Shown here: positions 1 to 17,162 of the stretch, piece after piece | How the letters are laid out: every line of letters starts with the position of its first letter | Numbering within the stretch: the first letter of the stretch is position 1 | Position numbers and translations under genes: made by a program | Notes under the pieces: generated by a model | What the model saw: the letters and a program-made list of their open reading frames with translations, nothing else | Databases searched by the model: none | Told to the model about the DNA's origin: nothing | Assembly (NCBI GenBank): GCA_001600695.1 | Contig: BCKQ01000006.1 | Location: 1 to 17,162, forward strand | DNA: 17,162 nucleotides | Reading direction: 5' to 3' | From: Ascoidea asiatica JCM 7603 | Lineage: Eukaryota; Fungi; Ascomycota

Positions 1-817
1 TTTTAGTAATAGTATTATATTTATTAGTATTTTTATTGATATTATTTTGAATTTCATGAAAATTAAAATATTTTATATATTTATTATCACAAATAGGATT
101 TTGACATGGTTTAATATCTGAAAGTGTAGAATTTATATAAAACTCAATGAGTTTTTTTGGATATTCTTTTTGAATAATAGTATTTAATTGAAAAAACCCA
201 TTCTTTGAATTTAAATATAATTTTTTATGATTTTTGAATAATTCAATAATATCTTTTTTATTGAACCTTAAAAGACATCCAGGTTCAATACAAACTAGAG
301 AATTAATAGGATTTAAATTATTTTTAAATATATTTATAATATAATGACTATAGCATTTATAACAATATTCATGATTACATTTTAAACCAATCAAATCAAT
401 ATCCTTCAAGTTGTTCTCAAAACAAATTTGACATTCATTTTTGTTTGTCTCTTTAAGCTCCATGTCATTAATTTTAGTTGACTTAGATTTATTTGGGATT
501 ATACCATTTTCAATACAATATTTGTTTATAATAAGATGATTAGTTTCAAAATTATTCTCATCTTCAGCATATAAATGATTCAAATCATCAATAATTTTAT
601 TAGAATTAAAATTATATTTATAGAATAATAATTGAAGCAAATAAATATTAGATTTTCCAAATTTTAAAGTTTCATTTAGGTTTAATATTTTTGAATTAAT
701 TTCATTTATTACATCTTCTTCAGTCATATTTTTATAATTAGGTTGAGGAATGCTCGAAACATTTTAGATAGGTTCCTTCGTTGATTTTAAAGGAAATTTT
801 TTTGCTGTTGATGACAT
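1..817 (-). CDS. RBR-type E3 ubiquitin ligase paralogue A (Ariadne/HEL1-derived), 3' end outside the window; in-frame TAA at codon 18, so either a pseudogene or started from Met31 (727)
   Basis: Not in the ORF track. Manual translation: MSSTAKKFPLKSTKEPI*NVSSIPQPNYKNMTEEDVINEINSK...LLFYKYNFNSNKII...CQICFENNLKDIDLIGLKCNHEYCYKC...CIEPGC...KPCQNPICDNKY. Collinear with the 4908-6860 protein and open from 727 to the window edge. Confidence 0.85.
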
Positions 818-1425
818 TGTTGAAAAAATAGTTAAAATAGATTAAAGTGGTTAATATATAAAAAAAAAAGTATTTAAAGTAATACTATATGTTATTAATA
901 TAGAACATTAGAAGTTTGAGAATATTAACTGAAAGGAAAAATCTGAAATCTTCGAGAAAAAAAAGCACATTTCATATTTATCTTTGTATTAACAGTATCT
1001 TTTATAATCAATTGAATATTAGCAGTTGCAAGCTTGAATTGAATGAATATAACACACATTATAATAATGTTACCATCAATAGTTAAAGCTAGCCATGAGG
1101 AAAGCTCTAACTTAAACAAAGGAGCAAAGCAAGCTAAACCTTAATCCCTGAACAACATAAATAAACACAAATAAACACAAATGCAAAATGGACAAGCACA
1201 GAAGGAGACCCGTGAAGTTGGATACAAAAACGAAACTAAAAAAAAAAAACAATACGCCATGTTTTGCCACACCGCCCAATCAACTGTGGATAAGTCTTAA
1301 AAGCCAGCTGAAAAGAAAATGGTTCTGAATCTCCAATTGCATCTTTATCACCATTGAACCTTGTAAAGGACCTGGAAATAGAAAAAATACCATTTACATA
1401 AAGACAATCTCATCAAATAACCACC
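818..1425. promoter_or_regulatory. Divergent intergenic promoter region shared by RBR-A and GAB1
   Basis: Lies between two divergent ATGs. Contains a poly(dA) tract and blocks (GGAGACC 1204-1210, GTTGGATACAAAAA 1217-1230, GCCACACC 1266-1273, TGTGGAT 1285-1291) that recur in order in the paralogous region 7269-7452. Confidence 0.6.
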
Positions 1426-2763
1426 ATGTTTATGATACCCATAGCTGCTTCAGTATTCAAACTCATTCTTCTCAATTCCTTAAATGACTTTTCCCATAAT
1501 TTTCTAGACAAGTTGGTGGAGTTCTCAACACCTGTCACAAGTTTCAAATCTCTTCAAGAGGGATTATTTCTACTTTCCACCTACAACAACTATGATTCCT
1601 CAATTGATATATACAATGGAGGAAATGTCCATAACACTCCCATATTGCTTCATTTCATGAAACTTTTCTACTCATCTACATCCAATTACAACTTCCTATT
1701 CATAAACTTTATCTACTGTTTGTCTGATTTCATAATAATATCTCAATTACTCCAGTTAAATGATTATTTTCAGACGAGTTCCAACAAGAATAAGAAGAAC
1801 AATAAATCCCGATCAAATTTAATCTTGATATTGTTTTTGAGTTTGAATCCCTTGAGTATACTATGTTTGTTATCCAAATCTACAATAATATTCTCCAATC
1901 TATTCATCACAACCTCAATATATTCAATAATTATTCTAAAGTCTCCAATATTGGCTTCAATTTCACTAGGCATAAGCTCATACTTATCATATTATCCATT
2001 GTTTTTGGTGATTCCATTAATATCCATATGTTTGAATTTGAATGAATCCAGGAAGCTGAATAAATCCGGGAAGCTGAAGCTGAATTTGGCTTTGGTATGT
2101 AAAATATGTTTTTATTTCACTGCAACAATACTATCCTTATTATATTATTCATATTACTTGAATGATAGTAACTGGAACTTTATTGACTCCACTTATGGTA
2201 CCATAATCTTTTTCAGAAAAAATCAACCCAATATTGGTCTATGGTGGTATTTCTTCACTGAGATTTTTGAATTCTTCAATGATTTCTACATTGGTGTATT
2301 CAACATATTCAATTTGATATTTGTGATTCCATTGACAATTAGATTTCATAATATCAATTCAGGTTCAATTCCAGCTGGTTTATTTTCAATGGTCATCAAT
2401 CTAGGATTAATCAATTTAACTAAATCATATCCTTCATTAAATGATTTTAGTTTTATTTTAAATCTAATAGTAATTCTAATATTAAATTTGGAGAATTTGA
2501 TCAAATTTTTGAAATTTCCTATTTTTTCAATTCTTATTATTTTACATTCTGTTATTTTAAGTCCGATTTTTTATTATTTATGGATTTACAGTGGAAGTGG
2601 TAATTCGAATTTCTTTTATGCAATCAATTTGGTTTTTGCAATTGGGTTTGGTAAATTGTTGACTGATTCAATATGGAGTTTCTTAGCTATTGAATATTCG
2701 TCTTCCAAGAAAAACACATCAGGTGAATTGAATTTGAATAAACTTAGTTTGACATTGATATAG
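1426..2763 (+). CDS. GAB1: GPI transamidase subunit PIG-U / Gab1
   Basis: 445-aa polytopic membrane protein with PIG-U family motifs VEFSTPVTSFKSLQEG, PNIGLWWYFFTEIFEFF, KSYPS and YLWIYSGSGNSNFFYAI. An in-frame TAA at 1399-1401 fixes the start at 1426. Confidence 0.95.
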   Translation: MFMIPIAASVFKLILLNSLNDFSHNFLDKLVEFSTPVTSFKSLQEGLFLLSTYNNYDSSIDIYNGGNVHNTPILLHFMKLFYSSTSNYNFLFINFIYCLSDFIIISQLLQLNDYFQTSSNKNKKNNKSRSNLILILFLSLNPLSILCLLSKSTIIFSNLFITTSIYSIIILKSPILASISLGISSYLSYYPLFLVIPLISICLNLNESRKLNKSGKLKLNLALVCKICFYFTATILSLLYYSYYLNDSNWNFIDSTYGTIIFFRKNQPNIGLWWYFFTEIFEFFNDFYIGVFNIFNLIFVIPLTIRFHNINSGSIPAGLFSMVINLGLINLTKSYPSLNDFSFILNLIVILILNLENLIKFLKFPIFSILIILHSVILSPIFYYLWIYSGSGNSNFFYAINLVFAIGFGKLLTDSIWSFLAIEYSSSKKNTSGELNLNKLSLTLI

Positions 2764-3073
2764 TACCTAGATAATTTTCATAGAAATAGAAGTAGAAATA
2801 GAAACAAATATAATGATTATTGTAGAGTAGGCAAGTTATCGTGTTTCATATATTCTTTATTTTGAACGATATCCGAATAGAGACCGTGTTTGCGGTGCTG
2901 CTCTTGCTTTTGCTTATCGAGCATTGCAAATTGAAGCTGAGAAAAGCGATAAATGCAAGTGGTGAATGAGTCTGCTACCGGTACTAGTAGGTAATGAAAT
3001 GATCAATTGAATGACAATGGATAAAGAAGAGAAAGAACAGTAACAAGATTTAGAATAAGAGTCATTCATCAAA

Positions 3074-3856
3074 ATGGCAATGGGACAGATTGCATTGGTT
3101 GTTTATAGAGGAGCCTCGGTGGTGGGATTCATCATCTTCATTGCCTTTTGCACTGTAGCTCCATTGGATATTATAATTAGAGTCAAAGCTGCCCACTACA
3201 ACTCTGCCTTCAATACATTCATTGCAATCATTTCATGTGTGGTGTTTGTGGTGTTTTTTCTTTTCTTGACCAGTTACAGGTTATTCAATTTGAGAAAGAC
3301 ATTGCAGGAGATTCCCAAGAGATACATTCCATTGGAAGAAAACGATCTCCCGCATGATATGTTGGTTAGTATAAAGGAAGCAATGGTGAAGAGTGGACGA
3401 ATATACAATTACTCTGTCAATCCAGTGATCAGAGATAAGAAAGATATTAGGAGTGGAAATAATAAAGAAACTCCCAGAGGTGTTATCCAACATGATGGTC
3501 TTAGTAATCCGGTGATCAACAATATCTGTTTATCTGAGAAAGAGATCATATCAGATGTGCTACCTACGAGTTTACCATACGAGGAAGTTCTTATTTCCAT
3601 TGGTAAAACAATGGCCGAGAGTAAAGTGGTGGATATCAATGGAGTTAAAATGTCATTCCGAGAAATGATAAGTGATAAACACAATAATCTCAGTAATTCC
3701 AATAATCATACTAGTCATAATGGCTGTAATGACGATAATGGTCAGAAAGCGGAAGAGCTTATTCTGTTGTATGAAAGACTAAGATTTTCCAATAAGCCCA
3801 TAAAGCAAGATGAATTTCTTATATTGCTTGACAAGTTGATAAGTCATGGTGTATGA
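3074..3856 (+). CDS. DLT1: Defect at low temperature protein 1 (Dlt1 family), two N-terminal TM helices
   Basis: Recognised motifs: PLD...NSAFNTFI between two hydrophobic helices, LQEIPKRYIPLEENDLP, IQHDGL and C-terminal LYERLRFSNKPIKQDEF. Confidence 0.88.
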   Translation: MAMGQIALVVYRGASVVGFIIFIAFCTVAPLDIIIRVKAAHYNSAFNTFIAIISCVVFVVFFLFLTSYRLFNLRKTLQEIPKRYIPLEENDLPHDMLVSIKEAMVKSGRIYNYSVNPVIRDKKDIRSGNNKETPRGVIQHDGLSNPVINNICLSEKEIISDVLPTSLPYEEVLISIGKTMAESKVVDINGVKMSFREMISDKHNNLSNSNNHTSHNGCNDDNGQKAEELILLYERLRFSNKPIKQDEFLILLDKLISHGV

Positions 3857-3974
3857 TTTATGAATGAAGAGTATATTTTTGTTTATGAGGTTATGTAAAT
3901 TTGGGTGATTTTATTCAAACCTATGTTCGAAATGGTAATCGGAGTCTGGTAAAACTTACGATTTTTGATTTTTC

Positions 3975-4014
3975 TGAATGTAAAGATGAATGTAAAGATG
4001 AATGTAAAGATGAA
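3975..4014 (+). repeat. 12-bp tandem repeat (TGAATGTAAAGA) x3.3
   Basis: Read directly; lies in the DLT1 3' flank. Confidence 0.9.
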
Positions 4015-4907
4015 ATGGAGGATGAAATGAAATTCCTGTATTTTAATTTAAATTTTATTCAAATAAAGAGTTTCGTTGAATTATACTTGTTTTACTATTT
4101 TATTGAGAAAGCCAGACACTTTGTTGGTGGTTGATGGAGTCTGACATTCTGTTTATAACTTGAGAAAAAGGCAGGTACGAAGTTTAACAAAAGTCTCTTT
4201 TAATGTATTCAGTTTTGGACTGTATGACAACGTAGTTTTTTTTTAGTTACATTCGACACATTGAAGTCCTGGGATTGAAGCCAAAAGGCAACAATTCATT
4301 TTATTTAGTTTCTATGGACTTTTGCATTTTTTGCATTTATTTAATTTTCTTCGATATTTATTTACAGGTGCATTAATGAAATACTAACAAAACTTTAGTT
4401 TTTTTTCCATCAATTTTATACTATGTGGATAAACTTTACAAACTTTGTTCTTATAATGTAAGGATTTAAGTAGATTAAGATTAATTTTATCAATTTATTA
4501 GCTTCAAAAATTAATTTCTTATCTACGGTTCGAAACAAAGAGCAATGTATTCTAAGCTTTTTGTTTTCAATTTAATCTAATATTACATTATTCCAAAGAT
4601 TTTTTACATCTCAGATTGTTTTTCAAAATTATATTTGCAGTATTTGAATTTGGAATCTTAGAAAATGGAAAACTTTCTGCATAAAGTATTATTACAAAAG
4701 TTGAAGAGCGCTTGATATTTCTTATTAGAAATGACTCTGTAGTAATTATTTACTTTATATAATCGAGTACTTTAGTTTTAATATCAAAATGAGTGTATCA
4801 TTAAATTGGATTCAATATGAATGGTTGTATTATTTATATATAAATGTGAACTATAAAATTGCACCAAAAACAAGTTTTGAATCACTCATATTCAAATTTT
4901 TTGAATA

Positions 4908-6860
4908 TCAGACAGAATTGGAGTTATTTTGAACATTCTCTTTTCGACAATAAATTAAGTAGAAAAATAGAAGTCCTATTAAAAGAGTGAAAGCTTCAAT
5001 AATTGCAATGATGAAATGTTTCATAGCCATATTCTCAAAGAAGTGAAGAAAAGCGAAAATTGAAGTTATAATAACCAGAACAATACTATTATATATTGCA
5101 AACACAGGTACTTCGAAATATAATGCCACCATACCAACTAAGAAACAAAGTGAAAGAAAAATAGTAGCTAGATAATCAGTACCCTCGAACTTCAAAACCA
5201 AAATAAGATAAAACAAAAAAAAGTTAAGAATTAAATAAAGAACTCCTAACTCCCACTTTACACGAGGGTCTCCAACATGATCAGGATGGTTGTACTCAGA
5301 CTTTCTAAAAATCATTCTATGAATGATGAAATTTTCTAACTTTGGATATCTTTTATATTTACTATTTGCAATAGAGAAATATGAATCATAAGCATCTTTA
5401 TAAATATCAGGAATTTTAAAATATTTTACTCTATCCCAATAAAAAGAAGTTCGACAAAAAGTACATATCATATGAGCACATCCTTTATTTTTTTCAATTA
5501 ACTTCTTACATGATGGACATTCTTTACAAAATAAATGTTTATATCTCAGAGAATTTAAAAATTCAGGTGATAAATTCCTATTAACTTGACAACATTTTTG
5601 ATTTGAATTATTCGATTTGGAAGATATTTCATCACAATTAAAACAAAATTGATGATTTTTAGAACATTTCACTATAAATACATTTGAATAGGACTCTGGA
5701 TTATTATTATATACTAAACTATCACCACCTATGATTCTGTTATTGTGATTTTTATTTTGATTATTATTAATATTATCAATATTTATTGGATTACTATAGA
5801 TTGAGTGGATTTCACTTTCATTTGGACTTACTGATAGATTAGCTTCATCATCAGTATTATTATTGGCGGTAATATTATTGTTATTGGAATAGTCAGTAAC
5901 AAAAGTACTACCATTGATAGTTAGGTGATTATACTCAATGTTAGTCTGAGTGCTATGATTAGACTGAATTTCTATATTTCTAGAATCCCTACTGTTATTA
6001 TTGGTATCGATATTGTTATTCTTGATATTGTTATGGGTATTATTAGTGTTATTAGTATCAGCGCTATTAGTATTGTTATTGATTGTATCTTGAATGTCAG
6101 AAAAATTGAAATATTTTATATATTGATCACAAACAGGATTTCGGCAAGCTTTGATATCCGAATCTGGAGAATTTATGTAGAACTCAATAAGCTTTTTTGG
6201 ATACTCTTTCAGGATTATGAGATTTAATTGAAAGAGATCATTTTCAGGATTGAAGTATAATCTTTGATGATTTTTGAATAATTCAATGATATCATTGTTA
6301 TTGAATTTTAAATTACATCCAGGTTCTATACAAACTAGAGAATTAATAGGATTTAAATTATTTTCAAAAATATTTATAATATAATGACTGTAGCATTTAT
6401 AACAATATTTATGATGACATGTTAAACCAACCATATCAATATCCTTCAAGTTGTTCTCAAAACAAATTTGACATTCATTTTTGTTTCTCTCCTTAAGCTG
6501 TTTAGGATTACCTTTAGATGGCAAATCTGACTTAGTTTTACCTGGAATAAGACCTTTTTCAGTAAAATATTTTGTAGAAATGGCATATTTATCTTCATAT
6601 GTGTTTTTTCCAGCTTGAATTTTTCTTAAATCTTTGACAATTTTATCTGAGTTGAAATTATATTCATACAATAATATTTCAACTTTATTCAAATATGCTT
6701 TTCCAAAATTTAAAATCTTATTCAAGTTTATTATCTTTGATTGAATTTCTTTTAATACATTCATATCGGTCATGTTTTTGTATTTAGATAATGAAGTATT
6801 TGGTTCATTTGCAACTGGTTGCATTACAGGTAATAAAGGAATTGGTGCTATTGCTGACAT
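4908..6860 (-). CDS. RBR-type E3 ubiquitin ligase paralogue B (Ariadne/HEL1-derived) with Asn-rich IBR insertion and four C-terminal hydrophobic helices
   Basis: 650 aa. Ariadne-like UBA-type segment (EILLYEYNFNSDKIV), RING1 C130-C182, IBR C239/C244...C399-x3-H-x-FCFNC, RING2-like CPSCKKLIEKNKGCAHMICTFC (catalytic-position C461, H463), hydrophobic helices about aa 536-638. Confidence 0.92.
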   Translation of the reverse strand: MSAIAPIPLLPVMQPVANEPNTSLSKYKNMTDMNVLKEIQSKIINLNKILNFGKAYLNKVEILLYEYNFNSDKIVKDLRKIQAGKNTYEDKYAISTKYFTEKGLIPGKTKSDLPSKGNPKQLKERNKNECQICFENNLKDIDMVGLTCHHKYCYKCYSHYIINIFENNLNPINSLVCIEPGCNLKFNNNDIIELFKNHQRLYFNPENDLFQLNLIILKEYPKKLIEFYINSPDSDIKACRNPVCDQYIKYFNFSDIQDTINNNTNSADTNNTNNTHNNIKNNNIDTNNNSRDSRNIEIQSNHSTQTNIEYNHLTINGSTFVTDYSNNNNITANNNTDDEANLSVSPNESEIHSIYSNPINIDNINNNQNKNHNNRIIGGDSLVYNNNPESYSNVFIVKCSKNHQFCFNCDEISSKSNNSNQKCCQVNRNLSPEFLNSLRYKHLFCKECPSCKKLIEKNKGCAHMICTFCRTSFYWDRVKYFKIPDIYKDAYDSYFSIANSKYKRYPKLENFIIHRMIFRKSEYNHPDHVGDPRVKWELGVLYLILNFFLFYLILVLKFEGTDYLATIFLSLCFLVGMVALYFEVPVFAIYNSIVLVIITSIFAFLHFFENMAMKHFIIAIIEAFTLLIGLLFFYLIYCRKENVQNNSNSV

Positions 6861-7138
6861 TTTTGAGTAAAATACAGTAGATTAAAGTGATTATTATTTG
6901 AAAAAGTATTTAAATAAATGAAAAAAAGTTATTGAGAATGCCATCTGGAAAAAAAAAATTAAAATTTTAAAGAAGATAAAGCATATTTATATAAATTTTA
7001 TATATACAGTATATTCATATTTTATTTTATATCATGAACGTTGATTGTATTTTATTTTGGTAGAATTTATAGTATATCCTATTGGAACTTATCAAATGTT
7101 TAGTATATATTCGTTATTCTCTGACTAAAAAGAAAACT

Positions 7139-7221
7139 TATTAAAATTTAAAATATAAATATACATAAATATATATAAAATATAAATAAAATATAAATAA
7201 AAATTAATAAAAATAAATAAA
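7139..7221. repeat. Almost pure A/T low-complexity tract with repeated AAAATATAAAT units
   Basis: One C in about 83 bp. AAAATATAAAT at 7150-7160, 7177-7187 and 7188-7198. Confidence 0.8.
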
Positions 7222-7236
7222 GGTCTATTAGAAGCG

Positions 7237-7308
7237 TAACTGTTAATACTGATAGAATCAAGAGCAGAGGAGACCAAACTTTAAATCAAGTTTTTAAATC
7301 GGGACTCT
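7237..7308 (+). promoter_or_regulatory. Conserved upstream block of RBR-B (inverted homologue at 10332-10403)
   Basis: TAACTGTT, GAGACCAAA and CGGGACTCT occur in the same order and the same 72-bp span as the reverse complement of 10332-10403. Confidence 0.55.
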
Positions 7309-7382
7309 GATTCTAGAAGGAAAGCAAACAAACCGGGCCGAGTGTTCTGCAGTTAGATGCGAGATGGTTTTGGATCCATATC

Positions 7383-7520
7383 GTTGGTTACAAAAAGCAC
7401 ACGCGCCACACCAGCCAACCATAAATTGTGGATGAGTCTGAACAACAAGCTGGAGGAAAACGAAAAAGAGGAAAGCTTCTTCTTTTACCTCACTCTCACA
7501 ATCACAGGCATCAAATTCTC
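7383..7520 (+). pseudogene. Relic of the GAB1 promoter plus a possible ~27-bp scrap of GAB1 coding sequence
   Basis: GTTGGTTACAAAAA, GCCACACC, TGTGGATGAGTCT and AGCTG match 1217-1310 in order. 7494-7520 (TCTCACAATCACAGGCATCAAATTCTC) weakly resembles GAB1 1523-1552. Confidence 0.6.
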
Positions 7521-7573
7521 CATTGGAGTAGTTCATTGAGAAGAATGGTAGAAGTGAGAACAAGAATGGTGAA

Positions 7574-7700
7574 ATGGAATAGGAGAAGATTGCTTTAGTT
7601 GTTCAGAAAAAGCCTCAGTGGTAGGATTTATCATCTTCATTACCTTTTGTGCCATTGAATATTAGAATCACAAAGCTGCCTAAATTTTACTTTCAATATA
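7574..7700 (+). pseudogene. DLT1: DLT1 pseudogene, 5' fragment
   Basis: Aligns to 3074-~3217: ME*EKIALVV / frameshift / ASVVGFIIFITFC...KAA*...FN versus MAMGQIALVVYRGASVVGFIIFIAFC...KAAHYNSAFN. Stop at codon 3, a frameshift and small deletions. Confidence 0.9.
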
Positions 7701-8004
7701 CTTTCTGGTGAAAGATATTGATTGTTTGCTTCGTTAATATTGTATCGTAACATATCTGTATTTGTGGAATTTAAATTTATGTAACGATAGAAATTGATAA
7801 TTGGAATTTATGACAATATTTATCTTCAGAATACTCACTGTAACTGTATCTTTGAAGTTTTTTGGTAAAAAAAAAAAATTCAAGTGGCCTGCGACAATCG
7901 AAAAATCCATGAAGTTCAAATTTTCATTTATTTGATTTAAAAACATCGAAAGGCTCAGAAATTTGATTGTGTTCTTTGAAAAAAATAAAATTAAGGCACA
8001 GGCT

Positions 8005-8037
8005 GAAGAAAGCCAGAAGAAAGCCAGTAGAAAGCCT
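8005..8037 (+). repeat. 11-bp tandem repeat (GAAGAAAGCCA) x3, third copy degenerate
   Basis: GAAGAAAGCCA GAAGAAAGCCA GTAGAAAGCCT read directly. Confidence 0.85.
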
Positions 8038-8640
8038 CGCGGTGTTGAGTATATTTTAAAAATTAACTTAAATGAGTATTGATAACAGATTTAATCAATC
8101 TTCTCAATTTTTGCACAAATTTTAGATCAGAGAAATGATATGAAGAAATAAAGAAAGGATCTTGAATAAGTTAACTTTCTATGCTTTGGGGAGAATTTCA
8201 ACAACAAAGCTAAATAAAAAAAAATTCTTGAACCAATTTGGATTTTTATTACTGTGAATTAACGCTAACCCTTTAAATATAGCTATAGAAAGTTAACTGA
8301 GGAGGCTATAATATAGTAGTAATTCAGCCGACTTTTATTATTGATAATATTTTTTAACATAAATTATAAACTAGATAATTTCAAAATAATTTTGTCATTA
8401 TAAGATACATTTGCTAAATGATGATGACATCTCTTTAGAAAGCTGAGATATTATTTTTTTTCAAATAATGTTTTTGAAAATTTACCATATCTTAGGAATT
8501 ATTTAGATTTTGAGGGTACCTTACTGAGTGCATCTATAAAATACATTGATTACCTTCAATATTACTGATGTAATGTTTTCCATTGACTCAGAATATTTAT
8601 ATTCAAGTAGTTAAAATATCCAAAAGTTGTAAAATTTATA

Positions 8641-9237
8641 ATGAAAGTATATTATATTGGAATTATCAAACCCCTTAGTGAAAAAAGTGGTATTGAATTA
8701 ACCAGTGTTGGAAGTCTTGACTGGTCTTCTTCAAATATTTATCGAAAGTTTATGAAAAATAATGCAATATCTAAGTTTCCATTAAAGTCAAACTCAAGAT
8801 TTTCACTGAAAGAAGGAGAATTAAATTTTCATTTTTATTTCAATTCAGAATTTAATTTTTCAAAAGAAAGAAATCTTGTTCAAGATCAGTTAAATTATGA
8901 AATTCAAAAAAAAAATTTTCTTTGTATTGTACTTATTACAGATTTAGAATATCCAATATTTGAAGCTCATTCTTTATTAAAAATAATCTTGGATGATTAT
9001 TTTTTTCATTTATTCTTATCAGATCAAAAAGATGATTTACATAATATTTTTCATGAAAAGGATGTTCCAAAATCTTTAGAATTTCTTAAATTATATAAAT
9101 ATTTAGATAATTATCAGAATCCTGAAAATGTTACTAATTTTATGGAAACTTCACTGGTTTATAGTGTAGATTATGTTTGTCAAAATGTTAAAATCAATGA
9201 TATAATAACTTATGAAATTTTAGATCCCATATTCTGA
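8641..9237 (+). CDS. YKT6: Divergent Ykt6-like longin-domain protein lacking a recognisable R-SNARE core and C-terminal CCAAX box
   Basis: MKVYYIGIIK...IELTSV, VLITDLEYPIFEAHSLLKIILDDY and LYKYLDNYQNP parallel Ykt6 MRIYYIG...[30 protein letters not shown] and LDTYISKYQDP (recalled family sequence). No RGEKLD motif; ends ...LDPIF. Probably a paralogue, not the functional orthologue. Confidence 0.8.
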   Translation: MKVYYIGIIKPLSEKSGIELTSVGSLDWSSSNIYRKFMKNNAISKFPLKSNSRFSLKEGELNFHFYFNSEFNFSKERNLVQDQLNYEIQKKNFLCIVLITDLEYPIFEAHSLLKIILDDYFFHLFLSDQKDDLHNIFHEKDVPKSLEFLKLYKYLDNYQNPENVTNFMETSLVYSVDYVCQNVKINDIITYEILDPIF

Positions 9238-10331
9238 TAAACAATTATAGCAACAATTCCAAAAAAAAGTAGAAAAATTTTATTGGAAAAATATAATCAA
9301 GAAAGAAGTCTTTGTTTTTTTACTTCCCTATAAAAACTATCTTTTTTAAAAAATCAGTTCTTACAGTGATCTCGTAGAAAAACACTGAAATGTTATAGTT
9401 TGAAAGCTAATTTTCTCAGTGATATAATGAAAAAAATATACTTTTTTGTTGAACAAGTTCATTTTTATAGTTTAATAAACACCCTTTTTGTTTACAATTA
9501 AACTAATTATTTTATCCAAGAATAGTTTTCATTTATGAAAATATGTAATTCATGATTTATTCAAAGACTTTAACATCTCTGAGATGTAAAAATATGACTA
9601 ACTATTCATATTAACTGGCATTTTGAAAGCCATTTTTAAACTTTTTATCTGCCTATATAAAATTCAATCAATTTGCAGTTCTGAGGAAGCTTAAACGCTT
9701 GAATGCTTAATTATATGGATGTATTGAAGATCTGAAACTAAAAAAGTTTATTATCTTTTCTTTTATTTTATTTCCATACATTGAACTTTCTAAGTAGTTT
9801 AAAATAGTAGTTTCCTTAATGCAAAAATTATTTACTTTCATTATTTTTGTTTCAATTTATCGAGGTTCATCAGTTTGTTACCAAATTGATTTTGAATCTC
9901 AAGGTTTATATAACAGAAATACTTCTAAGTCAATGCTAATCAAACATTTTCTTTCAAGTTGAAACAACTGTTCAATCAGCTTTAAAAAAAGCTTTATATG
10001 ACTTAAATTATTTGGATGATCTTAAAATAATAAATTGGATTAACGTAATGATCTAGTTTATTTCTATCTTAATTCATGTTTGGAGACTTAATAAGGTTTG
10101 AAGAATTTTCGAAAATGTATAATATGATATGCATTAAATCAAGAATTTTAGAAACCAGAGGAAAAAGCTTTGGGTTCTCTTTTCCCGAATTAAAAGTCTT
10201 ACAACGTTTGAACTTTTTTAGATTTTCTTTATTATGCTAAAATGGTTCCACTTTATTGAAAATTTTGAAGTGATTGATATCAATTAATTAATCAATTTTT
10301 ATTTCATAATCTTCTAAGAAACCCAAAATTT

Positions 10332-10403
10332 AGAGTACCGTTAACTTAAAGTAGACTACTACTTAACTTTGGTCTCTCCAATTTTTTATTAAATAAACAG
10401 TTA
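10332..10403 (-). promoter_or_regulatory. Conserved upstream block of RBR-C (inverted homologue of 7237-7308)
   Basis: Minus strand reads TAACTGTT...GAGACCAAA...CGGTACTCT. Confidence 0.55.
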
Positions 10404-11242
10404 TTCCATAATTATTAAATGACTTGTATTTACCAAGTCTGCTTAATTGAATTGAATTGTTCATTATCCTTTAGCATAGAGTTTATACTGTTCTGCAGGA
10501 GATCCGCAATTTCGGTCTCGTTTTTTCCTTGGCAAATTTCCAGCAGGGTCCAAAAAGCGGTTATATTCACAAAAACGTTTCTGCATGCACAGTAGCTTAT
10601 ATTTTATGCCGGTTCCCGGATTAAGCCTCGAATTTCCAAGAGGCTTCGACTTCCGAAAGTGTCCGGTTAAGGTTTTCTCTGTTCTAAAATTCATAGCCAC
10701 TTCAACCATAAAATAGATCCAAAATGTCCCTTCTTTGAAACCACTAGAATATTCAAAACGATTATTGAACTGGAATTGAATGTGCTAAGAAACAACAAGG
10801 TGCCGTTGAAAGCTTTCTTCACCTTGCCTCCTTATTGTAGGATTTTTTGAATGCAATTACTTTCATCATTTTATAAGACAAAAAAAAAGCTTTTCAGTTA
10901 CTTTTAATTGAATTGAATAATAATAAATTCATTTTTGACTGAAAATATAGAACTATTATTTCAATATTCCGAAAAAATGAATAAATAATGTATAAGTAGT
11001 AACAGCCCCTTTGATATTTCTATTGGTAAGCATATAAAAATTATTCAAAAAAAATGAAGTTAATTCGCAATTATAATTAACTCTGAAATATAAATAGTAT
11101 AAATATTCTGTTTCTCAAACCATCATATATCGACTTAAATATTATAATATTGATTATATATATATATCAATCAATTGAGAAAAAGAAAATAATAAAAACA
11201 ATAAATACTTTTAGAATAATCAATTAATTAGATAAGATCAAA

Positions 11243-12826
11243 ATGTCTTTAGATTCTGTTTTACCACATTATTCAGAAAATTTTCCATTATCTGAAATTG
11301 CAAATTCAAATATTACAAATATACCTAGGGAAAATAATCCAAGATATAAAAATTTATGTGAAAAGGATGTATTAGATGAAATTGAAAATAAAAAATTAGA
11401 ATTGAATAAATTTTTAAAATTTGAGGAAAATGATTTAGATTCTATAGAATTGCTTTTATATTCATTCAATTTCAATTCGGATCTAACTATAAAAGAAATT
11501 AATAATTTAAATGATATACAAAAACTAGAATCAAAGCCAGAAGATAATAAAGATAATGAAATTGAATTACTCAAAAGCCATCAAAAGTTTTTTGTATCAT
11601 ATGGTATAATTCCAGATTATAATCAATCAAACTCAAAAATTGATTTAGGAAAAAGTAATTTCAATGATATAAATATAATAAATCACAAAGAATGTACAAT
11701 TTGTTTTGAAGAATATGAAAATTCAATGGATTTTGTATCATTAAAATGTAATCATAAATATTGTTATAGTTGCTACTATGAATATATTAAAACTTTATTT
11801 CAAAATAATTTAAATCCAATCATTTTATTAAAGTGTTTAAATCCATATTGTAAATTAAAATTTAATAAAAATCAATTAATTAAACTTTTTGAAAATAAAA
11901 AATTTTTTTTTAAAAATGATGCTAATGAAGTTGAAAAGATCAAAAAACTAAATGATTTAATCACAAATAGTTATAATAAAAAACTAATTGAGTTTTATAT
12001 AACTTCCTTGAATTCAAATATAAAATATTGTCCATATCCTGATTGTAATAAGTTTTTAAAATATCATAATTATAATTCAATACTAGAAAATAATGAATCA
12101 AATTTAAATTCCCAAAATGAATTTATTGTCAAATGCCTTAATAATCATCAATTTTGTTTTAATTGTAATTCAATTTCAAATCTTGAAAATAAATCAAATT
12201 TATCATGTTGTTTACCAAACAAAAATGTTGATATCAATTTCCTAAAATCTTTACATTATAAAAGTAAATTTTGTAAACCTTGTCCATATTGTGCAAAATT
12301 AATTGAAAAAAATAGAGGTTGTGATATAATAGCTTGTGTATCATGTAAGGGAAAATTTGGATGGTCAAAACAAGCTTATTTCGAAATTCCTAATGAATAC
12401 AAAGAAGTTTATCTAAATTATTTTACTAAACCGGAAAATAGGATGACTTATCCAAATCATAATGAACGAACTAGAAGTGCAAGATATATTGAAAATTTTT
12501 ATCTTCTCCTAGGCTTGGCAATGATATTAGGACTTGCAGGTATTTGTTCTATGATTCCTACATTATATTGGTATGGAATCGAAAAAAATAAAATAAGTTT
12601 AATTGCTTTTATAAGTTCTGCAGAATTATCTTTAACTTTTTTGGGTTTCCAATCATGTAGTATGAATCATGGTAATTGTTTCTATTTTTTAATTTTGTTT
12701 TCCAAGATTTCAAGTTCTATTATTTGTGGAATTTATCATTCACCTTTATGGGCATTAATACTCTCTGTTATTCAAACAAGTTTTTTAATTCTGGCAAAAA
12801 TATACATATCTTATTTTCAACATTAA
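11243..12826 (+). CDS. RBR-type E3 ubiquitin ligase paralogue C (Ariadne/HEL1-derived) with four C-terminal hydrophobic helices
   Basis: 527 aa. ELLLYSFNFNSD segment, RING1 from C151 (CTIC...CNHKYCYSC...CLNPYC), IBR CPYPDC...CLNNHQFCFNC, RING2-like CPYCAKLIEKNRGCDIIACVSC (C360, no His), hydrophobic helices from about aa 419 to the end. Confidence 0.92.
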   Translation: MSLDSVLPHYSENFPLSEIANSNITNIPRENNPRYKNLCEKDVLDEIENKKLELNKFLKFEENDLDSIELLLYSFNFNSDLTIKEINNLNDIQKLESKPEDNKDNEIELLKSHQKFFVSYGIIPDYNQSNSKIDLGKSNFNDINIINHKECTICFEEYENSMDFVSLKCNHKYCYSCYYEYIKTLFQNNLNPIILLKCLNPYCKLKFNKNQLIKLFENKKFFFKNDANEVEKIKKLNDLITNSYNKKLIEFYITSLNSNIKYCPYPDCNKFLKYHNYNSILENNESNLNSQNEFIVKCLNNHQFCFNCNSISNLENKSNLSCCLPNKNVDINFLKSLHYKSKFCKPCPYCAKLIEKNRGCDIIACVSCKGKFGWSKQAYFEIPNEYKEVYLNYFTKPENRMTYPNHNERTRSARYIENFYLLLGLAMILGLAGICSMIPTLYWYGIEKNKISLIAFISSAELSLTFLGFQSCSMNHGNCFYFLILFSKISSSIICGIYHSPLWALILSVIQTSFLILAKIYISYFQH

Positions 12827-13148
12827 GTTTCTACTTGATAACTCAACCCTATATTTTACCCTATTATTATTTTAAATATTTCTTTTTGTTTCTAATACAC
12901 TTTTTTAACCTTGATAAATTCCTAGACACTTAAATTAGTTCCCAGTGGTGCGATTGATCTTGGGTTATCAGACCTAAAAATAAGATTAGTAATGCCAAAT
13001 TAAGTTATAAACAGAATGTCAGACTCCATCAACCACCAACAAAGTGTCTGGCTTTCTCAATAAAATAGTAAAACAAGTATAATTCAACGAAACTCTTTAT
13101 TTGAATAAAATTTAAATTAAAATACAGGAATTTCATTTCATCCTCCAT

Positions 13149-13188
13149 TTCATCTTTACATTCATCTTTACATTCATCTTTACATTCA
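13149..13188 (-). repeat. Mirror copy of the 12-bp tandem repeat
   Basis: Reverse complement of 3975-4014, same copy number. Confidence 0.9.
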
Positions 13189-13306
13189 GAAAAATCAAAA
13201 ATCGTAAGTTTTACCAGACTCCGATTACCATTTCGAACATAGGTTTGAATAAAATCACCCAAATTTACATAACCTCATAAACAAAAATATACTCTTCATT
13301 CATAAA

Positions 13307-14089
13307 TCATACACCATGACTTATCAACTTGTCAAGCAATATAAGAAATTCATCTTGCTTTATGGGCTTATTGGAAAATCTTAGTCTTTCATACAACAGA
13401 ATAAGCTCTTCCGCTTTCTGACCATTATCGTCATTACAGCCATTATGACTAGTATGATTATTGGAATTACTGAGATTATTGTGTTTATCACTTATCATTT
13501 CTCGGAATGACATTTTAACTCCATTGATATCCACCACTTTACTCTCGGCCATTGTTTTACCAATGGAAATAAGAACTTCCTCGTATGGTAAACTCGTAGG
13601 TAGCACATCTGATATGATCTCTTTCTCAGATAAACAGATATTGTTGATCACCGGATTACTAAGACCATCATGTTGGATAACACCTCTGGGAGTTTCTTTA
13701 TTATTTCCACTCCTAATATCTTTCTTATCTCTGATCACTGGATTGACAGAGTAATTGTATATTCGTCCACTCTTCACCATTGCTTCCTTTATACTAACCA
13801 ACATATCATGCGGGAGATCGTTTTCTTCCAATGGAATGTATCTCTTGGGAATCTCCTGCAATGTCTTTCTCAAATTGAATAACCTGTAACTGGTCAAGAA
13901 AAGAAAAAACACCACAAACACCACACATGAAATGATTGCAATGAATGTATTGAAGGCAGAGTTGTAGTGGGCAGCTTTGACTCTAATTATAATATCCAAT
14001 GGAGCTACAGTGCAAAAGGCAATGAAGATGATGAATCCCACCACCGAGGCTCCTCTATAAACAACCAATGCAATCTGTCCCATTGCCAT
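13307..14089 (-). CDS. DLT1: Defect at low temperature protein 1 (second, identical copy)
   Basis: Identical translation to 3074-3856. Confidence 0.88.
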   Translation of the reverse strand: MAMGQIALVVYRGASVVGFIIFIAFCTVAPLDIIIRVKAAHYNSAFNTFIAIISCVVFVVFFLFLTSYRLFNLRKTLQEIPKRYIPLEENDLPHDMLVSIKEAMVKSGRIYNYSVNPVIRDKKDIRSGNNKETPRGVIQHDGLSNPVINNICLSEKEIISDVLPTSLPYEEVLISIGKTMAESKVVDINGVKMSFREMISDKHNNLSNSNNHTSHNGCNDDNGQKAEELILLYERLRFSNKPIKQDEFLILLDKLISHGV

Positions 14090-14399
14090 TTTGATGAATG
14101 ACTCTTATTCTAAATCTTGTTACTGTTCTTTCTCTTCTTTATCCATTGTCATTCAATTGATCATTTCATTACCTACTAGTACCGGTAGCAGACTCATTCA
14201 CCACTTGCATTTATCGCTTTTCTCAGCTTCAATTTGCAATGCTCGATAAGCAAAAGCAAGAGCAGCACCGCAAACACGGTCTCTATTCGGATATCGTTCA
14301 AAATAAAGAATATATGAAACACGATAACTTGCCTACTCTACAATAATCATTATATTTGTTTCTATTTCTACTTCTATTTCTATGAAAATTATCTAGGTA

Positions 14400-15737
14400 C
14401 TATATCAATGTCAAACTAAGTTTATTCAAATTCAATTCACCTGATGTGTTTTTCTTGGAAGACGAATATTCAATAGCTAAGAAACTCCATATTGAATCAG
14501 TCAACAATTTACCAAACCCAATTGCAAAAACCAAATTGATTGCATAAAAGAAATTCGAATTACCACTTCCACTGTAAATCCATAAATAATAAAAAATCGG
14601 ACTTAAAATAACAGAATGTAAAATAATAAGAATTGAAAAAATAGGAAATTTCAAAAATTTGATCAAATTCTCCAAATTTAATATTAGAATTACTATTAGA
14701 TTTAAAATAAAACTAAAATCATTTAATGAAGGATATGATTTAGTTAAATTGATTAATCCTAGATTGATGACCATTGAAAATAAACCAGCTGGAATTGAAC
14801 CTGAATTGATATTATGAAATCTAATTGTCAATGGAATCACAAATATCAAATTGAATATGTTGAATACACCAATGTAGAAATCATTGAAGAATTCAAAAAT
14901 CTCAGTGAAGAAATACCACCATAGACCAATATTGGGTTGATTTTTTCTGAAAAAGATTATGGTACCATAAGTGGAGTCAATAAAGTTCCAGTTACTATCA
15001 TTCAAGTAATATGAATAATATAATAAGGATAGTATTGTTGCAGTGAAATAAAAACATATTTTACATACCAAAGCCAAATTCAGCTTCAGCTTCCCGGATT
15101 TATTCAGCTTCCTGGATTCATTCAAATTCAAACATATGGATATTAATGGAATCACCAAAAACAATGGATAATATGATAAGTATGAGCTTATGCCTAGTGA
15201 AATTGAAGCCAATATTGGAGACTTTAGAATAATTATTGAATATATTGAGGTTGTGATGAATAGATTGGAGAATATTATTGTAGATTTGGATAACAAACAT
15301 AGTATACTCAAGGGATTCAAACTCAAAAACAATATCAAGATTAAATTTGATCGGGATTTATTGTTCTTCTTATTCTTGTTGGAACTCGTCTGAAAATAAT
15401 CATTTAACTGGAGTAATTGAGATATTATTATGAAATCAGACAAACAGTAGATAAAGTTTATGAATAGGAAGTTGTAATTGGATGTAGATGAGTAGAAAAG
15501 TTTCATGAAATGAAGCAATATGGGAGTGTTATGGACATTTCCTCCATTGTATATATCAATTGAGGAATCATAGTTGTTGTAGGTGGAAAGTAGAAATAAT
15601 CCCTCTTGAAGAGATTTGAAACTTGTGACAGGTGTTGAGAACTCCACCAACTTGTCTAGAAAATTATGGGAAAAGTCATTTAAGGAATTGAGAAGAATGA
15701 GTTTGAATACTGAAGCAGCTATGGGTATCATAAACAT
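14400..15737 (-). CDS. GAB1: GPI transamidase subunit PIG-U / Gab1 (second, identical copy)
   Basis: Identical translation to 1426-2763. Confidence 0.95.
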   Translation of the reverse strand: MFMIPIAASVFKLILLNSLNDFSHNFLDKLVEFSTPVTSFKSLQEGLFLLSTYNNYDSSIDIYNGGNVHNTPILLHFMKLFYSSTSNYNFLFINFIYCLSDFIIISQLLQLNDYFQTSSNKNKKNNKSRSNLILILFLSLNPLSILCLLSKSTIIFSNLFITTSIYSIIILKSPILASISLGISSYLSYYPLFLVIPLISICLNLNESRKLNKSGKLKLNLALVCKICFYFTATILSLLYYSYYLNDSNWNFIDSTYGTIIFFRKNQPNIGLWWYFFTEIFEFFNDFYIGVFNIFNLIFVIPLTIRFHNINSGSIPAGLFSMVINLGLINLTKSYPSLNDFSFILNLIVILILNLENLIKFLKFPIFSILIILHSVILSPIFYYLWIYSGSGNSNFFYAINLVFAIGFGKLLTDSIWSFLAIEYSSSKKNTSGELNLNKLSLTLI

Positions 15738-16345
15738 GGTGGTTATTTGATGAGATTGTCTTTATGTAAATGGTATTTTTTCTATTTCCAGGTCCTTTAC
15801 AAGGTTCAATGGTGATAAAGATGCAATTGGAGATTCAGAACCATTTTCTTTTCAGCTGGCTTTTAAGACTTATCCACAGTTGATTGGGCGGTGTGGCAAA
15901 ACATGGCGTATTGTTTTTTTTTTTTAGTTTCGTTTTTGTATCCAACTTCACGGGTCTCCTTCTGTGCTTGTCCATTTTGCATTTGTGTTTATTTGTGTTT
16001 ATTTATGTTGTTCAGGGATTAAGGTTTAGCTTGCTTTGCTCCTTTGTTTAAGTTAGAGCTTTCCTCATGGCTAGCTTTAACTATTGATGGTAACATTATT
16101 ATAATGTGTGTTATATTCATTCAATTCAAGCTTGCAACTGCTAATATTCAATTGATTATAAAAGATACTGTTAATACAAAGATAAATATGAAATGTGCTT
16201 TTTTTTCTCGAAGATTTCAGATTTTTCCTTTCAGTTAATATTCTCAAACTTCTAATGTTCTATATTAATAACATATAGTATTACTTTAAATACTTTTTTT
16301 TTTATATATTAACCACTTTAATCTATTTTAACTATTTTTTCAACA
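15738..16345. promoter_or_regulatory. Mirror copy of the GAB1 / RBR-A divergent promoter region
   Basis: Reverse complement of 818-1425. Confidence 0.6.
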
Positions 16346-17162
16346 ATGTCATCAACAGCAAAAAAATTTCCTTTAAAATCAACGAAGGAACCTATCTAAA
16401 ATGTTTCGAGCATTCCTCAACCTAATTATAAAAATATGACTGAAGAAGATGTAATAAATGAAATTAATTCAAAAATATTAAACCTAAATGAAACTTTAAA
16501 ATTTGGAAAATCTAATATTTATTTGCTTCAATTATTATTCTATAAATATAATTTTAATTCTAATAAAATTATTGATGATTTGAATCATTTATATGCTGAA
16601 GATGAGAATAATTTTGAAACTAATCATCTTATTATAAACAAATATTGTATTGAAAATGGTATAATCCCAAATAAATCTAAGTCAACTAAAATTAATGACA
16701 TGGAGCTTAAAGAGACAAACAAAAATGAATGTCAAATTTGTTTTGAGAACAACTTGAAGGATATTGATTTGATTGGTTTAAAATGTAATCATGAATATTG
16801 TTATAAATGCTATAGTCATTATATTATAAATATATTTAAAAATAATTTAAATCCTATTAATTCTCTAGTTTGTATTGAACCTGGATGTCTTTTAAGGTTC
16901 AATAAAAAAGATATTATTGAATTATTCAAAAATCATAAAAAATTATATTTAAATTCAAAGAATGGGTTTTTTCAATTAAATACTATTATTCAAAAAGAAT
17001 ATCCAAAAAAACTCATTGAGTTTTATATAAATTCTACACTTTCAGATATTAAACCATGTCAAAATCCTATTTGTGATAATAAATATATAAAATATTTTAA
17101 TTTTCATGAAATTCAAAATAATATCAATAAAAATACTAATAAATATAATACTATTACTAAAA
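16346..17162 (+). CDS. RBR-type E3 ligase paralogue A, second copy, 3' end outside the window; TAA at 16397-16399, open frame from Met at 16436
   Basis: Mirror of 1-817. 242 uninterrupted codons from 16436 to the edge encode the UBA-like segment, intact RING1 and the start of the IBR. Confidence 0.85.

Follow-up and report, generated by a model that had tools for sequence, protein, structure and literature searches.

In this study, we analyzed a DNA stretch of 17,162 nucleotides from the fungus Ascoidea asiatica JCM 7603 (positions 1–17162 of contig BCKQ01000006.1, C6 in the following; the whole stretch is referred to as the window) and searched the 20.3-Mb, 71-contig assembly of this genome for related genes. 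The window carries two intact genes for RING-between-RING (RBR) proteins, paralogues B and C, which combine an Ariadne-type backbone with half of a RING2 and a hydrophobic tail at the place of the Ariadne domain. They belong to a multicopy family in which the catalytic cysteine was found to be repeatedly exchanged for serine. Sampled words of positions 4300–12950 were present at 98–99% in two DNA samples, both of which may be the source strain.

Paralogue B (4908–6860, minus strand; 650 amino acids) is a single uninterrupted, intron-free open reading frame (ORF). It starts with a UBA-like element as in Ariadne proteins (amino acids ~28–78; 6627–6779, minus strand), followed by a RING1 with 8 of 8 ligands (6315–6473, minus strand). 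This RING1 lies within 368 nt that match paralogue D without a difference, which is suggestive of gene conversion. The IBR (5589–6146, minus strand) is split by an Asn-rich insert of ~150 amino acids, lacks the His ligand and has a Cys-Cys end. Of RING2, the first zinc site is present (5436–5528, minus strand) and the second is absent. The catalytic Cys461 (5478–5480) and the His are both kept in the motif GCAH, and the third residue of the triad (Glu/Gln) is gone. Four hydrophobic helices (amino acids 538–636; 4953–5249, minus strand) with Kyte-Doolittle values of 2.3–2.6 form the tail. Directly downstream of B, a decayed and internally deleted C-like relic was found (4396–4727, minus strand).

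Paralogue C (11243–12826, plus strand; 527 amino acids) is likewise one uninterrupted, intron-free ORF with the architecture of B. The Pfam and module scan located RING1 at 11693–11851, the IBR, again without the His ligand and with a Cys-Cys end, at 12029–12211, and the half RING2 with the family-specific extra Cys344 at 12272–12364 (all plus strand). Here the catalytic Cys360 (12320–12322) is kept and the His is replaced by Ile (GCDI), so that C is without both the catalytic His and the third triad residue. The four helices of the tail (amino acids 420–522; 12500–12808, plus strand) have Kyte-Doolittle values of 1.7–2.3, helices 2 and 3 being moderate. An AlphaFold2 model of C reached a mean predicted local distance difference test score (pLDDT) of 80, with ARIH1/ARIH2 as best fold matches and a helical tail at lower confidence. 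Intact ORFs, modules and tail windows confirm the initial annotation, which had described both genes as RBR genes ending in four hydrophobic stretches. Its RING1, IBR and RING2 modules were all recovered, but RING2 is only half present and the IBR ligands are altered.

Beside one normal HEL1 gene with a complete RING2 and the sole Ariadne domain of the genome, eight derived copies were detected, of which five are intact and have a tail, one has none and two are damaged. Relics were found as well, and these counts are lower bounds. The intact tailed copies are B, C, D (contig C19), E (C6, 26.6–28.6 kb) and F (C1), and the tail-less copy G (C2) ends directly past RING2. Copy F (L020:3679–5871) is the most HEL1-like one, having the IBR His and the top UBA-like score, yet an active-site Ser. 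Its C-terminus is a KKxx motif, which could mean retrieval to the endoplasmic reticulum or may be chance. Both damaged copies reach into the window margins. The 5′ part of paralogue A (1–817, minus strand) continues on C19 as A19 and has an in-frame TAA at codon 18 (764–766), and the 5′ part of A6 (16346–17162, plus strand), which extends beyond the window, shares this stop; a restart at Met31 is possible. In the assembly sequence, A19 has a frameshift within the tail. The frameshift of A6, between RBR and tail, was found in read contigs of both DNA samples, which rules out an assembly error. Broken copies were translated through the break with X. Further relics nearby comprise one of the D tail and one of the E tail. 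Since the terminal sequence of C19 is the same as bases 1–4161 of C6, it is likely that six copies lie together in a single ~40-kb cluster made by inverted duplications. A6 and A19 share 1018 identical bases, which may in part be a collapsed assembly consensus, and then their tails diverge to 36% amino-acid identity. The family history is one of birth-and-death evolution with gene conversion.

Across seven paralogues, the eight zinc ligands of RING1 are invariant, and so are 19 of 20 Cys columns, compared with 29 of 206 other columns (14%). Two of the invariant cysteines, C323 and C344 in the numbering of C, were gained specifically in this family. The IBR His is kept in F only; elsewhere a Cys-Cys end occurs together with an extra invariant Cys, which may substitute for it. 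In every copy, RING2 is cut off behind its first zinc site, with 4 of 4 ligands of the second site absent. The number of synonymous substitutions per site (dS) among the paralogues is ~0.5–1, and the ratio of the non-synonymous counterpart to it (dN/dS) is mostly 0.3–0.7 in the core. Selection acts on the zinc fold of the family.

The sole variable Cys column is the catalytic one, with Cys in B, C, A6, A19 and G and Ser in D, E and F, i.e. in three of the five intact tailed copies. The Ser codons are TCT in D and F and TCA, next to an insertion, in E. Among the canonical-pattern RBRs fetched, 229 of 230 have Cys at this position. A single origin of the Ser state was ruled out, as D, E and F are not a clade (approximately unbiased (AU) test, p=0.0014). 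Three changes are needed on the tree, and reversals or conversions are possible among them. In RBR proteins, the catalytic Cys is essential, while other triad residues including His vary among active members, and the C-terminal half of RING2 is their most variable part (PMC9834252). The Ser analogue of HHARI takes ubiquitin, yet is inactive (PMC3940038). The description of the whole family as de-repressed ligases holds only in part, in view of the Ser copies, the lost His of C, the third triad residue missing in B and C and the second RING2 zinc site missing in all copies. These residue states could even be read as those of an entirely non-catalytic family of membrane-tethered scaffolds binding the ubiquitin-conjugating enzyme (E2), ubiquitin or NEDD8, in which the RING2 Cys is not needed and its position alternates by drift with isosteric Ser. 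It fits this reading that only the catalytic Cys column varies, with three or more changes along the tree, and that the His was lost in C, D, E and F, the third triad residue in B and C, and the second zinc site throughout. On the other side, Cys-x-His is kept in B, A6, A19 and the distant G across a large synonymous distance, and RING2 C-terminal halves vary in active RBRs as well (PMC9834252). We consider a purely scaffolding family unlikely.

A hidden Markov model (HMM) of the region preceding RING1, built from 37 Ariadne proteins, matched B (E 4e-5) and C (E 5e-5) and 0 of 13 unrelated tailed RBRs. The UBA-like HMM matched 7 of 7 tested copies (best-domain E 4e-13 to 1e-3), in agreement with the Ariadne-like N-terminus noticed before. 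Pfam, PDB and fold matches support the order RING1-IBR-RING2. The best PDB matches of the family were ARIH1/ARIH2, both by sequence and by fold, and the family profile aligned to ARIH1 from the UBA-like region through RING2. The HEL1 of this genome is nearest to Ascoidea rubescens HEL1 (63% over IBR-Ariadne). Seven tested copies were monophyletic with a support of 100/100. Under yeast-rich sampling, the family was placed within the budding-yeast HEL1 clade (94/99), and AU tests did not reject its grouping with Ascoidea HEL1 (p 0.21–0.49). An RBR of the ITT1/RNF14 type was not detected in this genome, and an ITT1 ancestry of the family was ruled out, since no copy has an RWD domain. For the derivation from Ariadne/HEL1 that had been proposed, the UBA-like element and the Ariadne matches speak in favor of the Ariadne part, whereas HEL1 parentage is favored but not proven; a HEL1 duplicate would be the simplest source.

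For the detection of tail helices, four non-overlapping windows of 19 amino acids with a Kyte-Doolittle value of at least 1.6 were required. Four such windows were found in both B and C, strong in B and weaker in C, and this hydropathy suggests insertion of the tails into a membrane. In most copies, helices 1 and 4 are flanked by basic residues. Ariadne domains lack any such window in 180 of 181 cases, and their charged fraction is at least 0.22, compared with 0.06–0.13 in the tails, a threefold difference in charge. Among 630 intergenic windows of 115 codons, none was free of stops and five had four segments. Nevertheless, position, helix number (four) and similar length would also allow the tail to be the Ariadne four-helix bundle itself, diverged to a hydrophobic form and not replaced, and a few C residues align by eye with HEL1 helices. 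The hhalign probability for this relation was 0.1, an HMM of 52 Ariadne domains scored every tail below 0 bits, shuffle tests gave z values of at most 1.6, position-specific scoring matrices (PSSMs) of the helices were not significant (best p 0.03 of 15 tests) and fold searches of the B tail gave no Ariadne match. A transformed Ariadne domain appears highly improbable to us. The line-up by eye of the C tail with the HEL1 Ariadne helices failed four statistical tests. HMM, profile, PSSM, composition and fold search agree with the earlier view that the Ariadne domain was lost and the tail is unrelated to it, and a soluble Ariadne-like bundle is not what the searches showed. A donor of the tail was found neither in the genome nor in Pfam, Atlas, Foldseek or VIA-align, which gave generic helical matches only, and fold searches of the B tail gave no specific structural relative.

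Between B and C, the tails could not be aligned (z=0.1), as already noted in the initial annotation, and the rapid evolution assumed there for the tails is supported. Alignments were obtained for A6-A19 (z=17), C-E (z=10) and B-A19 (z=5.4), and weak ones for C-F (3.2) and B-F (3.0). The tails form a group of C and E, with F more weakly attached, and a group of A6, A19 and B, weakly linked to the first via B-F, with D apart; one origin or two origins of the tail are both compatible with this pattern. For C-E, tail dN was ~2 times core dN at a tail dN/dS of 0.7, and for A6-A19 tail dN/dS was 1.07 (interval 0.65–1.96, both copies being damaged). Such rates would fit relaxed constraint or diversifying selection alike, and relaxed constraint on an anchor may account for the divergence as well as substrate recognition would.

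The two genes lie between the arms of an inverted repeat (left arm 1–4161, right arm 13002–17162, no strand assigned), which are 4161 bp long, 100% identical in the assembly and contain the 5′ part of A, GAB1/PIG-U and a gene for 260 amino acids. The latter is presumably DLT1-like; a Pfam scan of it gave no match. The repeat also equals the C19 end (G000:C19 272975–277137) and has N positions within the A gene at its borders. It probably exists as two genuine, nearly identical copies, which were assembled three times from a single consensus. A. asiatica NRRL Y-17576 is described as a heterothallic diploid (PMC6692504). The 8.8-kb core holding B and C could invert between the arms. Upstream of B, it contains relics of the 5′ end of the 260-amino-acid gene (7572–7680, plus strand) and of arm intergenic DNA (6932–7015), which are an older copy of the RBR/GAB1/260-amino-acid unit. 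An ORF of 198 amino acids (8641–9237, plus strand) has a weak Longin match (E 0.004) and resembles a YKT6-like duplicate that is truncated and lacks the SNARE part. Genes for tRNA-Met(CAT) are located directly 3′ of A6 (L016:3097–3170), of the D-tail relic and E (L017:3253–3324) and of D (L019:1838–1909); they may seed duplications or travel along with them. Also duplicated on C6 and C19 are an 801-amino-acid gene, RNase III/dsRBD-like by eye (L016:6975–9380, plus strand), and an identical HAD-like gene of 234 amino acids. On C19, the 3′ part alone of the former remains, directly downstream of A19 (L019:6545–6919, minus strand).

With three relics, two damaged copies, one tail-less copy, duplicated blocks, the inverted repeat and adjacent tRNA-Met genes, the family could also consist mostly of redundant duplicates decaying in a rearrangement-prone region, the tail being a captured T-rich and merely membrane-tolerant sequence; tails are T-rich, and their dN/dS values of 0.7–1.1 would fit. 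This is improbable in our view, as frames and zinc ligands were maintained through near-saturating synonymous divergence, two new invariant cysteines were gained and intergenic controls did not produce stop-free four-segment tails. Moreover, the change is always to Ser, while AT-biased decay would be expected to favor Tyr or Phe.

When 1.84 billion cluster representatives were scanned in full by HMM, no close relative of the family appeared; the best single-module matches were ordinary Ariadne proteins with E values of 1e-23 or weaker. Ten proteins of this genome had no exact counterpart in the collection. Together with the eight copies beside HEL1, this supports the lineage-restricted expansion that had been predicted. 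A metagenome scan returned ordinary RBRs only (23–34% identity), and word searches with C and the family alignment gave no match, but carry no information, as they did not even recover Ariadne proteins. A. rubescens proteins are part of the parent collection, therefore the family is probably absent from the annotated proteome of this species. In the papers covered, which did not include older fungal surveys, there was no fungal membrane-anchored Ariadne derivative and no natural Ser-RBR family, and neither a fungal RBR with a tail of this kind nor a paper describing one was found.

With Ariadne RBRs (yeast Hel1, human ARIH1/HHARI and ARIH2/TRIAD1), the family shares the UBA-like element, the C-x4-C second loop of RING1, the IBR and the first RING2 zinc site. 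In contrast to them, it is multicopy, has a hydrophobic tail and lacks the Ariadne domain and the second RING2 zinc site; the IBR His is replaced (except in F), two invariant Cys are new and three copies have Ser. Animal RNF144A/B possess one or two transmembrane (TM) segments. In RNF144A/B (PMC7458406) as in the Ascoidea proteins, a membrane anchor follows the RBR core at the C-terminus, but RNF144A/B belong to another RBR subfamily with a complete RING2, while the Ascoidea proteins have a UBA-like element and four segments. This likeness would be convergent. Plant RSL1/RFA6-9 also have a C-terminal TM domain (PMC8268412), and with the unrelated RBRs bearing two to three hydrophobic C-terminal segments they contradict the assumption that membrane-anchored RBRs are restricted to animals. 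Arabidopsis RSL1/RFA6-9 resemble the Ascoidea family, as compared at the RBR core only, in being an expanded RBR family with anchored and anchor-less members, for which ubiquitination at the membrane is the model; they differ by a single TM domain, a plant-specific subfamily and known substrates. The rows of the trees contained neither RNF144 nor RSL1 by name; the UBA-like element argues for an Ariadne ancestry that would be separate from both. Protist-like RBRs (P0038, P0063, P0109, P0119, P0127, P0150) combine RBR modules with two to three hydrophobic C-terminal segments, but have a complete RING2 and no UBA-like element and are separate on trees; ciliate-labelled Atlas clusters are nearest by features. 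The tailed RBRs P0059 and P0109 are of eukaryote type and labelled as 'archaeon' metagenome-assembled genome in NCBI; probably they are mis-binned protist contigs. The half RING2 recurs as a type in unrelated RBRs (P0033, P0040, P0064, P0085, P0086, P0104, P0114, P0116, P0139), one of them from Pelomyxa. Taken singly, the multi-segment tail and the half RING2 are not unique, since each recurs in unrelated RBRs. Both together on the Ariadne backbone of a yeast protein, with repeated active-site Ser, were not found elsewhere.

Removal of the Ariadne domain activates HHARI (PMC3940038), and this domain is also a docking surface for CUL1-RBX1 (PMC7904520). We consider it fairly probable that A. 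asiatica has a mixed family of cytosol-facing, membrane-anchored and cullin-independent RBR proteins, consisting of active Cys copies and Ser pseudo-ligases. A duplicate of an Ariadne-type HEL1 gene would have founded this species-restricted birth-and-death family. In the founder, all that follows the first RING2 zinc site would have been lost, and with it the Ariadne domain and its functions in autoinhibition and cullin docking. The founder would have acquired a short helix together with a four-pass anchor, the source of which did not emerge from the searches. If expressed, the proteins would expose the RBR module to the cytosol at a membrane, where RING1 would recruit E2~ubiquitin with no need of neddylated cullins. 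The Cys copies, B best and C attenuated, could then pass ubiquitin via the RING2 Cys to membrane neighbors as presumed substrates or to themselves. With their Ser, D, E and F would be folded pseudo-ligases, which bind E2~ubiquitin or ubiquitin or load a dead-end ester, and thereby may act as modulators or partners.

Several observations weigh against this model of a membrane-anchored mixed family. At a strict threshold, D has two and E three hydrophobic segments, and the B tail modelled alone gave four helices at low confidence (pLDDT 69, predicted template modelling score 0.38). Among the eight copies, B is the only intact tailed one with Cys and His. The dN/dS intervals often include 1. The stem branch of the family is ~3 substitutions per site long, and with two other taxon sets the family sat basally in the Ariadne group of the RING1-IBR-RING2 phylogeny without a definite placement. 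RNA sequencing runs containing this DNA were not found.

A further step, which we regard as rather doubtful, would be that the repeated Cys-to-Ser change is adaptive and the family a membrane recognition system. Hypervariable four-helix tails would bind in-bilayer targets, possibly foreign toxins, products of selfish elements or non-self proteins, and active copies would tag these for removal; Ser copies would be natural ubiquitin traps or ligases with ester chemistry, pairing with or tuning the active ones. The weight of the finding is limited by its restriction to a single non-model species and by the decay evident in some of its members. Within these limits, the family would be a natural experiment, in which an Ariadne ligase was freed of autoinhibition and cullin docking, left with a one-zinc RING2 and relocated to the membrane independently of RNF144 and RSL1. 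It raises two questions: whether catalysis is possible with half a RING2, and whether nature has adopted the Cys-to-Ser active site known from laboratories as an inactive trap.

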